DNA of 64,000 bases, taken from assembly GCA_023515725.1 (NCBI GenBank), contig JALDTO010000013.1:93715-157714 (forward strand). The letters are read 5' to 3'. The notes under the pieces are model-generated. The model saw only the letters and a list, made by a program, of their open reading frames with translations, was not told the origin of the DNA and did not search any database. The translations under genes were made by a program, and so were the position numbers. Source of the stretch: Amoeboaphelidium protococcarum X5. Its lineage: Eukaryota > Fungi > Aphelidiomycota. Positions 57,161 to 61,467 of the stretch are shown piece after piece (the stretch's first letter is position 1; every line of letters begins with the position of its first letter).

Positions 57161-57277
57161 TTAGACGTGACTTGGAATTTAAAAGTGATAAAAGAATCAA
57201 TCTAAAAGCTTAATAACATTGAAAGAATTTATCTGAATATATTCATTGAATTGAATTGAATTTCATTGCTATCACTA

Positions 57278-57724
57278 TCAAAAATTTCTATTTTCAATGC
57301 GAGGCACGTACTTCCTTGGAATGAAGAATGGATGCAAATTGCCAGCATTTTCAATCAAATGGCGGCCAATATAGTATGTCACCTGCGCCCAGAGAATCAG
57401 CATGATAGTCAAAGTCGCAGTATTAGCAGAAGGACTTGTTCTTCTTCCGCACCACGAAACTTTCAATTCCCTTGGTCAAACAGACAAAGCAGATTGTGGA
57501 AGACATTGGCTCGGGAGTAATCACCACCTGAGCATATTCATTTAGCAAATGAACAAATTGTCGAAGGGGAAATTATCCATTAAGACCAGATCGCTCCAGA
57601 ACATACGCTCCGTAGAAGATCAAATAATTCAGACGGTCCGTCTATTTCAGCTTTTCACCCTTCACAGGAAGTAGAGTTCTCACAAAATCTAACGCGACAC
57701 TTTTGTTAAAATGATAGAGTTCTA
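57278..57724 (-). pseudogene. 3' half of the interrupted compact Fanzor/TnpB-like RuvC gene
   Basis: ELYHFNKSVALDFV...YLIFYGA...VVITPEPMSSTICFVC...FCQYCDFDYHADSLGAGDI: RuvC-II E (57512), two CxxC, RuvC-III D (57398). In-frame stop at 57351, or 57278 after a frameshift near 57375. Confidence 0.82.
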
Positions 57725-57815
57725 CTGTATTTTTCACAATTAAGCAAACTAGGGACAGCAACGGATTTGCACCGCCGATCAGACTGTTGCGCGCGGAGCC
57801 TGGACTGATCATTAT
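57705..57815 (-). ncRNA. Candidate Fanzor omega-RNA (scaffold to element end, plus flank-derived guide)
   Basis: About 85 nt between the Fanzor stop and the element end, with stems GATCAG/CTGATC and GGCGG-TGCAAAT-CCGTT; position matches the known TnpB/Fanzor omega-RNA layout; 5' limit unknown. Confidence 0.6.
57725..57748. repeat. Terminal inverted repeat (end 3' of Fanzor)
   Basis: 57726-57738 TGTATTTTTCACA is the exact reverse complement of 61061-61073; similarity extends to about 24 nt. Confidence 0.88.
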
Positions 57816-59899
57816 TGAGGACGCGGAGGATCGTATCGAAATGGAACCGGCCTTTCACCATCGTCACGATTTCTTGCCAGAAAGATGTAGCGAATGTTAC
57901 GTGCTGCATTCACATCACGGTGCCAGATAGCTAAGCAATTGTTATTTGGACAATGCTTAATTCTCCATACTCGTGATTGACCAAGCTCACTCTCGCAATT
58001 ACTACATCTTTGACTGGTTCGATATTCAGGGACCAAGCGGACTCTGCAGCGTTTCTTCAGCTCATAAAACAGCCGCTTGTTAGGAGTCGCAGGATATCCA
58101 GGAGACGCAGTGTCAAAGTTGCCAGCGCCGTATGCAATGATGGTGTTATGGTCAAACTAACCATCTTGGCGGAGAGTCAGCATACGCGCCAAATTGTCAT
58201 AGGCCCTTTGGCGCTAGGAGAATAGCTTTCTCCTCAGCTTTCGCCACTTCTCAGGACGGTAGAAGCCAGTGAATGCATCTCTATGTTGCAGTACGTACTG
58301 CAAATGTTAGATGATCCCCAGAAACGAAGTTGATTTGGCGGAAGGAATCTGGGCCATGGCATTAACGACCTCTGGAGCTATTTCATTCCATGCAGCCTTC
58401 TTCTTTTCACCAAACTTTTCTCCGTTCTCTTCACGCCATCTAGCAGTCGTGTACACCAGCTCATGCGTTCCATCAGCAAACGGCGTCTGATCGGTTGGAA
58501 CATCTGCAATCCGGTCATCAGGACCACAAGAAGCAGCCAAAAGCACGCCACGATTGACGTCAATCCCGATAACGCGGGTCTCATTGTTTACATCCAGCGG
58601 TTAATATCCGGTACCATCGAAAGCGAACCCGTAGCGGCTAGCAGGAGGGGCAGGATAGGCAGGACGTAAAACGGAAGCAGAACAGCCAACACCATCGGAT
58701 GTAATGGAGTAGCCAAAACGTCTTCTCTGATTGCCAGTAGTGGAGACCTTGTTCAACTTGAAACATTGTGACCACAAAGCGTGAACATCCATCTGACGGA
58801 CATCTGGCAGATTAGCAGCAACACATATCTCCTTCAGCACATTGGAGGTGATCAGGATGTGTTTCTGCGTAAATCCATTTAGAGGCAGCAACGCGTAAAC
58901 GTTTAGTAGAGGACCTTCATTGTTTAGCAGATACTCCTCCTCATACATTTGATGATTATTCTCAAATGTACGAAGGATACGCCACATGGATTTCAGATAC
59001 AGATGCCAGTTGTTCTGAAGACTAGCCTTATCCATTGGGAGATTGCAAAGGATATATTGACGTGCACGCGTCTCGTAGTAGTCCATGTAATACACCACCA
59101 ATTCTCCGTTACCACAATTGTCGATGATTTCTGCAGGATAAGGAGGCATTTCTTCAATATCTTCAGGTGGGTTTATCAACGCCAAGACATAAACAGCAAC
59201 GGTGCAAACATCATCCTCCTCCAAACAGAAGCCGAGATGTTTTCGAAACTTGTGGCGCAGCCATTGTTTCAGCCTTGATGGCAAGTTTGTGCTTATATGT
59301 CTAGCGCAATCGTCATTGTGAGCTGAAGCCAAGGCAGTAACCATGTTTGAGTAGCCTCGCATGTCACACCAAAACAAGTCAGCAGGACGACGAGGTACAT
59401 AGTGTGCTTCAATAAACTCGTTTAAAGCCGCCCAGTTGCAGGTATTACGATTAAGCAGATCACGCCGCCTAGGATTAGCAATCAAAGAGCTGAAGAAGTT
59501 ACGCATCTACCCATTTGCGCCAAAGCGGATGTCTGGCATTGGAGTGTCAGGATTGTATACCAAATGATTAAGCACGAAGGACAGGAGAAGTCTGCAAGCC
59601 TCTACTTTGAGATCAGTACAACGCGAAACCAAATCACTTATCTCATGCTTCACCGCGTCGATTTTGCAAAATACATTTAAACCAATAGGTACAGCTACGT
59701 AGGCTTCAGCCACAGGTATTCCCATATTGTCTTGTGGTTTGGCAGCATTTTTCGCACGAGGGACATAATTGGGACACAGTTTACTGGATGAGCGCTTGTG
59801 ATCGTCGCGACCACATGCTTTACAATTTACTTCTCGTTGACGTTTACGCGGCGGTAAGGCACCACCGATATCAGCTACCTCTATAGGGGGATCTGCCAT
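57809..59899 (-). CDS. Fanzor1 RNA-guided endonuclease (eukaryotic TnpB homolog), intact, 696 aa
   Basis: One frame with 6 TAR=Gln codons. NLS-like PPRKRQR, CCHC knuckle, ITSDGVGCS, RuvC-I VIGIDVNRG (D 58561), IIAYGAGNF...P.TP, RuvC-II LVPEYRTSQRCSNC (E 58027), CPNNNC, RuvC-III WHRDVNAARNI (D 57916), RP tail. Confidence 0.93.
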
Positions 59900-59944
59900 T
59901 TCTGATTTTATTGAAGAAAAGAGTTGAAACCAGTCCGATTACGC

Positions 59945-59976
59945 TTTTATACCCAAAAAACCAACTTTATGATTGG
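59945..59976 (-). promoter_or_regulatory. CCAAT box and TATA box upstream of Fanzor
   Basis: Minus strand CCAAT (59976-59972) and TATAAAA (59951-59945), 45 nt before the ATG. Confidence 0.5.
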
Positions 59977-60479
59977 CAGAAAATGGCTCGGACGAATCTC
60001 AAAATGGAGTCCAGCTTTGCCAAATCTAATTTTAACCGCTAAGTCAAGTAGTTACTATAAATAGGAGGAAGCAGATCAACGTTAAGATCTTGACACAAGA
60101 TATAGACAGCCGCTAAATTGAGAAGTGACCAATGCGTCTATGGAACATCTAATGAAGTTAATCATCGGTTGAGCAATGAACGATATATATTTTGATTAAG
60201 CGCTATACATTTTGTTAAATTTATATTACGCATTATTGTACTTCGATTTACGCTTACATGGTAGTTTTGTTCGTGCGCAATTATATTGGTACACATCAAG
60301 GCTTAATGTAGACATTTGTCATAGTAAAAGAGTCTTCTGATTATGACTTTGAATAATCGGCGGACAGCTGCAGTATATACTGAACGGCTACAGTATATTT
60401 TCCCCCCTTTTGGTTCCTCTTAACAGCCTCTACTCTTAGGTTGCTGACGCTTGCAACAGATGCTTCAATCGCCTCGTTT

Positions 60480-61007
60480 ACCTACAATCATAGTAAGATG
60501 AGAATCGACTCCAACGAGCGTTCAATCGACAATATATATTCAAAGGCTGAACAGGCTTAAAGGATATGTTTTTGGTGATCAATGCTGGCATGATGCATGT
60601 CAATAAAAATCCACCAGTGCCCGTTGTAGATTTAACGCGTCGCCTCAGTCGTCGTGGATTGGTCGTCTCCGTCCCCAGATACCACAGTACAAAGCTCTGC
60701 TCATGTTGCCATCATGGGCTTCGGTTGGAAAAGGTTGGTGTTTACGACTGTCACCATACGAAGAGTAGAAGGCGCGTCCCCAAGTAGTCCCACCCTGTGC
60801 TATGTTGCTTTGATGCTTCTAGCTCCTTTCTGCATGTATCGTCCAGCTGTCCTGACCGTCAACAGAAGTAGGTGGAGTCAAGCTTAGCTTTTGCCCAAAT
60901 TGCTAAGTCTAAGGCCTACCTTATTTGTATATCGGGATGTCAACGCAACTTAAAGCATGCTACTGATGGCAGTAGATTTTGCGGAGAGTAGAGGACGCCC
61001 TGATTGA
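60480..61007 (+). pseudogene. Decayed second Fanzor (C-terminal remnant) inside the element
   Basis: LVINAG...PPVPVVDLTRRLSRRGLVVSVPRYHSTKLCSCC, then CPNC (60892) and YRDVNATQSM...GRPD (60930-61004), spread over three frames; RuvC-II Glu position reads Arg; 5' limit approximate. Confidence 0.78.
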
Positions 61008-61049
61008 AATCGTCGCGTTTGACACCACGCTTGACCTACTTTGTTGTGA

Positions 61050-61074
61050 TTCGCTTAAAATGTGAAAAATACAT
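61050..61074. repeat. Terminal inverted repeat (end 5' of Fanzor)
   Basis: TTCGCTTAAAATGTGAAAAATACAT followed by TA at 61075-61076. Confidence 0.88.
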
Positions 61075-61467
61075 TAATTGCAAAGAGAGGACTTAGTCGC
61101 TTGAGTAATATTCACGCATTTCTTGAAATCTACCAAGATACAAAGGCAGGCGATCTTAAAGAACCTTCAAATCTACAGTCTTCAAACTACGAGCAAACTC
61201 TCGACTTTATTCTGAATGCTGTTATACTGCTGCAGCAACAGTTGGCGATAGAATCTTCTTCATATAATCCTGCTTACTGATCACAACACGGACAGACTAA
61301 TCGTACACAATCTGATTCAGAGGTAATACTTGATTCTCCAGTTATGGCATGTATGATGATATCCAATTCTTTAAACCAGCATCTACGCCAATTTTTATAG
61401 CATGCTAATAGTTCAAGATCTAAGGTACATCAAACGTTATAGATTAACAGGACCTCGGACGATCCAT
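61075..61467 (-). pseudogene. 5' half of the interrupted compact Fanzor/TnpB-like RuvC gene
   Basis: MDRPRSCQ...AIKIGVDAGLKNW (RuvC-I D 61383)...VVISKQDY...SLKTVDL...EYYSSDQVLSLQL, 131 codons open up to the TA. Confidence 0.82.

Follow-up and report, generated by a model that had tools for sequence, protein, structure and literature searches.

The window, by which the whole stretch of 64,000 nucleotides analysed here is meant, derives from the 23.6-Mb genome of the aphelid Amoeboaphelidium protococcarum and contains a 3,350-bp element that interrupts a multicopy host gene and carries one long minus-strand open reading frame (Table 1). The element has both features of a transposon with terminal inverted repeats (TIRs), namely the repeats themselves and a duplicated TA target site, and no transposase ORF was found within its boundaries. 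A. protococcarum translates UAR as glutamine (PMC5304391), and under this code (code 6) 28 ORFs longer than 250 aa open in the window, as opposed to one under the standard code. The frame upstream of the right end then becomes one ORF ending in TGA, and therefore the stretch singled out by an earlier sequence-only reading, whose quoted minus-strand sequence matches the window letter for letter (57811 to 57705), starts at a true stop codon. A pseudogene was rejected on the same grounds, the shared 'stops' all being TAR. The ORF is intact in five copies, with pN/pS values of 0.16–0.27 among copies. The nearest proteins are NCBI hypothetical proteins of A. protococcarum (90–93% identical).

Table 1. 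Features of the element and its insertion site, in window coordinates.
Feature	Position	Strand	Remarks
Whole element, 3,350 bp	57725..61074	-	Imperfect TIRs of ~30 bp; TA-duplicating; without transposase of its own
Right-hand TA of the target-site duplication	57723..57724		
Interrupted multicopy host ORF	57270..61467	-	Insertion in frame context L-Q-L|E-L; weakly Fanzor-RuvC-like
Fanzor1 ORF, 696 aa, TAR=Gln code	57809..59899	-	RuvC D447/E625/D662 and CxxC zinc finger intact
ATTA left-flank motif including left TA, predicted TAM	61075..61078	-	10/11 copies
Predicted omega-RNA scaffold, ~89 nt, from ORF TGA to TA duplication	57723..57811	-	5' end approximate
Stem-loop 1, GAUCAG/CUGAUC (predicted)	57777..57810	-	98% of cells paired
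Stem-loop 2, GGCGG/CCGUU (predicted)	57760..57776	-	Subfamily changes in loop
Terminal stem 3 with inner hairpin (predicted)	57724..57759	-	Overlaps right TIR
Predicted 15-nt guide GAACTCTATCATTTT	57708..57722	-	Copy-specific host flank; length by SpuFz1 analogy only (PMC10432273)
Left arm: outward-facing, degenerate 3' terminus of Fz-B, a second Fanzor1 family	60580..61074	+	Catalytic E lost; frameshifted

The full-length ORF carries the rearranged RuvC triad, with its glutamate near the zinc finger, and the triad, the zinc finger and a WED-domain SDG (residues 401–403) all align with homologues. The RuvC-I motif reads DVN rather than DPG, the corresponding SpuFz1 motif being DPN. A profile built from 22 homologues recovered SpuFz1 (1e-30), GtFz1 (5e-19) and PpFz1 (6e-18), and matched TnpB and Cas12f weakly. 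Similarly, a structure model of the 40%-identical homologue P0004 (pLDDT 87) found its best match in SpuFz1 (TM ~0.7), with SpuFz1, GtFz1 and PpFz1 well ahead of TnpB and Cas12f. The Fanzor1-specific (T/S)DG signature of the WED domain thus accompanies a Fanzor1 fold, the latter as read from the homologue's model, and judged by its sequence the window protein is a Fanzor1 with intact catalytic residues. Near its N terminus lies a zinc knuckle (59830–59740, minus strand) resembling zf-CCHC_6, below the cut-off, that is common to this Fanzor1 clade. The sister species A. occidentale, which uses the standard code, also harbours a Fanzor1 (locus L070, protein P0078; 33% identical to P0004), with a long hairpin region downstream.

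Comparison of copies defines the element boundaries. Thirteen distinct, near-identical right ends share the terminus ...AAAAATACAG|TA, after which come flanks that are unrelated and all different, so that likeness among siblings stops exactly after TACAG/TA, where the sequence-only reading had predicted it would. In silico deletion of the element and one TA yields TTGCAATTA|GAACTC and restores the reading frame of the host gene, and this empty site, proposed in the same reading, can be aligned, with no gap at the junction, to a 77%-identical paralogue of that gene and recurs in an empty allele from public runs, identical save for a G>A change directly after the TA. The ATTA at the left junction was rejected as a part of the element, since it is retained both in the paralogue alignment and in the real empty allele. 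A 3-bp duplication (TAN), considered because some copies begin on the left with the base that also follows the right TA, was likewise discarded, as it did not fit 5 of 10 sites. The two ends behave differently, the right one being constant at CTGTA across copies, whereas the terminal bases of the left TIR vary among 11 copies (ATGTA, CAGTA, TTGTA, ATATA), an unusual combination for a mobile TIR element. The interrupted ORF itself (paralogues L052 and L053) ends in a CxxC...CxxC-HAD motif and matches a Fanzor RuvC profile weakly (E 3e-4, in a small search), with no Pfam match, and a DDE-like match adjoins its L052 paralogue (C264:1842691). Elsewhere in the assembly, two outward-facing TIR-like matches lie ~660 bp apart (G000:C205:742106-742765), a candidate 'ghost' mini-element comparable to the SPu-1 ghosts.

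Between the ORF and the right end lies a conserved non-coding region bounded by the variable flank, in which the sequence-only reading had placed an omega-RNA. Both stems it had named are present in the MFE and centroid folds, GATCAG/CTGATC (57810–57805 with 57782–57777) with a pair probability of 0.92 and the GGCGG/CCGTT hairpin with ~0.77. The structure was incomplete in that RNAfold adds a third, terminal stem, GCUGU/ACAGU around a UUUGC/GUGAA hairpin, which is made by the TIR and closes on the element end. The single-sequence fold energy is no better than that of shuffles (z = +0.41), and the case therefore rests on comparison. In the 53 nt of scaffold upstream of the TIR only two sites changed between subfamilies, both in loops, against a subfamily synonymous divergence of ~0.19 (p = 0.0013), and the equivalent left-end stretch changed at 16 of 51 sites (Fisher p = 2e-4). 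Since the right end is constrained beyond the TIR and the left is not, something beyond transposase binding is kept at the right end only. All three stems are kept in the consensus fold (95% of cells paired), mostly through one-sided G-U changes; a covariation check, proposed alongside the original prediction, returned one double-sided change and values reached by 22–161 of 500 shuffles, hence not significant. Two metagenomic kin loci (L069, L071) match the spacing seen here, with a CAGCTG|TA-type end following the stop codon after 89 and 87 nt, respectively.

An extension of the scaffold into the ORF was rejected, as divergence at four-fold sites, few in number, shows no drop near the stop. 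Known Fz1 scaffolds open with an SL1 of 7 bp, after which they vary (PMC11423790), so that here more than one hairpin may correspond to SL1 and the predicted 5' end is approximate. Three loci (L048, L049, L050) hold isolated altered scaffold copies without an ORF, and in L048 and L049 part of stems 1–2 is missing and a common, different downstream sequence follows.

The left arm comes from another Fanzor family. Fz-B ORFs elsewhere in the assembly (L020, L021; contigs C207, C249) are open over the 651 codons covered, share 24% identity with the window Fanzor1 in RuvC, and terminate in the same TIR. Their stop codon lies ~37 nt from the end, so any Fz-B omega-RNA must overlap its ORF. Outside the TIR the relic in the window has diverged by 27–31%, a neutral rate, and only the TIR has been kept; as the relic is also dead, the left arm is best viewed as a borrowed end rather than a second guide. 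Contig C207 contains pogo-type transposase matches (40% identical) that precede Fz-B on its own strand, and kin Fanzors at L069, L073 and L075 likewise have pogo-type transposases upstream of them, which makes such an enzyme the likely mover. Most likely, the element would be mobilised in trans by the pogo-type (HTH_Tc5 + DDE_1) transposase linked to this TIR through Fz-B. Upstream of one Fz-B copy (G000:C207:296703-303568), several fragments of pogo-type transposases form a cluster with incomplete Fz-B duplicates, likely the autonomous partner in rearranged or misassembled form.

Three alternative accounts of the right end and its left counterpart need to be weighed. The conserved stretch could be simply a transposase-binding end joined to the 3' UTR of the Fanzor mRNA, its hairpins being incidental, an account favoured by the fold z-score and the weak covariation. 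Yet the ~30-nt TIR suffices for a transposase and is the sole part kept at the left end, while the right end keeps 53 nt more, and every tested Fanzor1 of this layout yields an omega-RNA at this place, rendering the account improbable. A view of the element as two-headed, with both ends serving as working omega-RNA templates that guide two Fanzors to two flanks, gains some appeal from the outward-facing 3' end of a second Fanzor1 family in the left arm. It is, though, quite implausible for a relic that has lost its catalytic glutamate, is frameshifted and mutated in its terminal bases, and drifts neutrally beyond the TIR. Finally, the second hairpin had been likened to a tRNA T-arm or B-box, which might provide the RNA with an internal Pol III promoter. 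The T-loop-like GGTGCAAATCC behind this likeness is limited to the four youngest copies and absent from the other 13 aligned ends, where GGTGAAAATCC or GGTGAATATCC takes its place; the hairpin also deviates from the B-box consensus GGTTCRANNCC, and ARAGORN and Rfam gave no match on the scaffold. The resemblance is hence not conserved, and a promoter role scarcely credible. A scan for bacterial promoters and terminators produced nothing useful.

The left-flank motif is at issue as well. Intact left junctions read ATTA in 10 of 11 copies (background frequency of AT before TA 9.8%, p ~8e-10), the exception being one copy with GATA. From position -3 outward the flank varies, which makes ATTA rather than CAATTA the motif and narrows the earlier proposal of a TAM among the suffixes of CAATTA. 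The mirror motif TAAT occurs on one of 13 right flanks, and of the sites known at both ends, all eight with a non-palindromic ATTA carry it on the left (p ~0.008, two-sided). In SPu-1, two conserved bases likewise precede the left inverted repeat only, and the measured TAM, CATA, corresponds to that flank (PMC10432273, PMC3627910). By this analogy the left-flank motif strongly suggests ATTA as the TAM, bearing in mind that agreement between TAM and insertion motif is described as holding only 'in some cases' (PMC10530073). A rather less likely scenario, albeit the strongest of the competing ones, is that the omega-RNA is real and its TAM shorter (TTA or TA) or different, so that ATTA would reflect an orientation-dependent target preference of a transposase acting on ends that differ in their last bases. 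The variable left and fixed right ends, the GATA copy, and the TTA/TA TAMs used by KnFNuc and others are in line with this scenario. On the other hand, with near-symmetric TIRs a dimeric transposase would be expected to leave ATTA on one side or the other, contrary to the one-sided pattern, and the SPu-1 precedent again favours the longer motif.

Taken together, an omega-RNA with an ATTA-like TAM at the right end of the element is the reading we prefer, with a probability of about 0.82. The original prediction is supported in the sense that it agrees with every comparative test available, subject to three corrections: the terminal stem, the B-box, and the assignment of the TA and the guide start. 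As to the last, the scaffold was correctly seen to run to the element end, and the guide had been taken to begin with the TA. In RNAs of other Fanzor1 elements that make a target-site duplication (TSD), the scaffold is reported to have three stems and to incorporate both TIR and TSD, with a guide of ~15 nt behind it (PMC10711439); hence the TA here is probably part of the scaffold, and the guide most likely starts after it at G57722 (GAAC). No perfect TAM plus 12-nt target was found in the assembly, and near matches occur at about the control level.

Under the preferred reading, the right-end stretch would encode the omega-RNA of a Fanzor1 OMEGA system. Transcription past the right end would give an RNA that is trimmed to ~100 nt, leaving the scaffold (with TIR and duplicated TA) and ~15 nt of copy-specific host flank. 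Together with the 696-aa Fanzor1, this RNA would cut alleles in which ATTA is followed by the guide sequence, namely the site emptied by excision or its counterpart on the homologous chromosome, and with the filled allele as repair template the element would be retained or spread. An occupied site would be immune because there the left TIR comes after ATTA. We infer such homing by Fanzor cutting by analogy with TnpB biology.

Both allelic forms have been sampled. Four public runs of one study (X1–X4), consisting of contigs of unrecorded type in which RNA starts and ends are not visible, all contain the joined empty form (joint 57721/61074), reading CAATTA, then A rather than G, then AACTC. In one run a contig also links the Fanzor ORF, through the right end, to 31 bases of the same flank, so filled and empty forms seem to coexist. 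Paralogues carry G where the empty allele has A, and run contigs show about four other differences from the window in 750 flank bases. The change, a single base in a single study, affects guide base 1, next to the predicted TAM, and may be a plain polymorphism, an excision scar retaining the first base of the element, or a seed mutation that evades cutting. It is a doubtful conjecture that insertions persist only in the orientation that provides the ATTA TAM, and that the empty allele escapes cutting through this change, possibly itself an excision scar. If true, such orientation-limited persistence and an escape allele would amount to in vivo evidence that in a eukaryote Fanzors drive homing and targets can escape them. 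As regards the role of Fanzors in their hosts, an organism that can be cultured, that has both filled and empty alleles of one site and that shows a one-sided motif would allow a direct test of the homing model. The analysis also provides a testable specification of a young, intact aphelid Fanzor1: the protein (with TAR recoded to Gln), a ~89-nt scaffold, and a predicted ATTA TAM.

Among characterised systems, that of Fanzor1 in A. protococcarum most resembles SpuFz1 in the SPu-1 element of Spizellomyces punctatus (PMC10432273, PMC3627910), a lone Fanzor1 ORF in a TIR element without transposase that duplicates TA. The two share a pair of additional conserved bases that precede the left TIR and have no counterpart on the right, the (here predicted) location of the omega-RNA in the interval from stop codon to right end, its guide being taken from the flank, and the RuvC-I D-x-N motif, and SpuFz1 is the best PDB match by both profile and fold. 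They differ in sequence (~16% identity, P0004 to SpuFz1), in flank motif (ATTA rather than CATA), and in scaffold, a 75-nt two-stem structure in SpuFz1 as opposed to an 89-nt three-stem prediction, while the N-terminal zinc knuckle, the TAR=Gln code and the left end borrowed from another Fanzor family set the aphelid element apart. The predicted RNA is closer to the reRNA of SfAV Fanzor1 (PMC10711439) in its three-stem fold without pseudoknot, a scaffold containing TIR and TSD, and an extension of ~15 nt past the TSD, although that Fanzor1 is viral and lepidopteran, with another TSD and transposon family. GtFz1, PpFz1 and KnFNuc share the Fanzor1 fold and A/T-rich TAMs (TTAA, ATN, TTA), and belong to other transposon hosts with other scaffold sizes; the accessible parts of PMC11423790 and PMC10530073 report an ATTA TAM for none of them. 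Pogo-type Tc1/mariner elements (HTH_Tnp_Tc5 + DDE_1) have a similar TA duplication and short TIRs with CAG/CTG-type ends, but encode the transposase that is absent here. An association of Fanzors with Mariner/Tc1 elements is known; our literature search found no real co-mention of Fanzor and pogo, and no paper on Fanzors in A. protococcarum or aphelids. The system is thus an SPu-1-like Fanzor1, of a known kind and not a new type.
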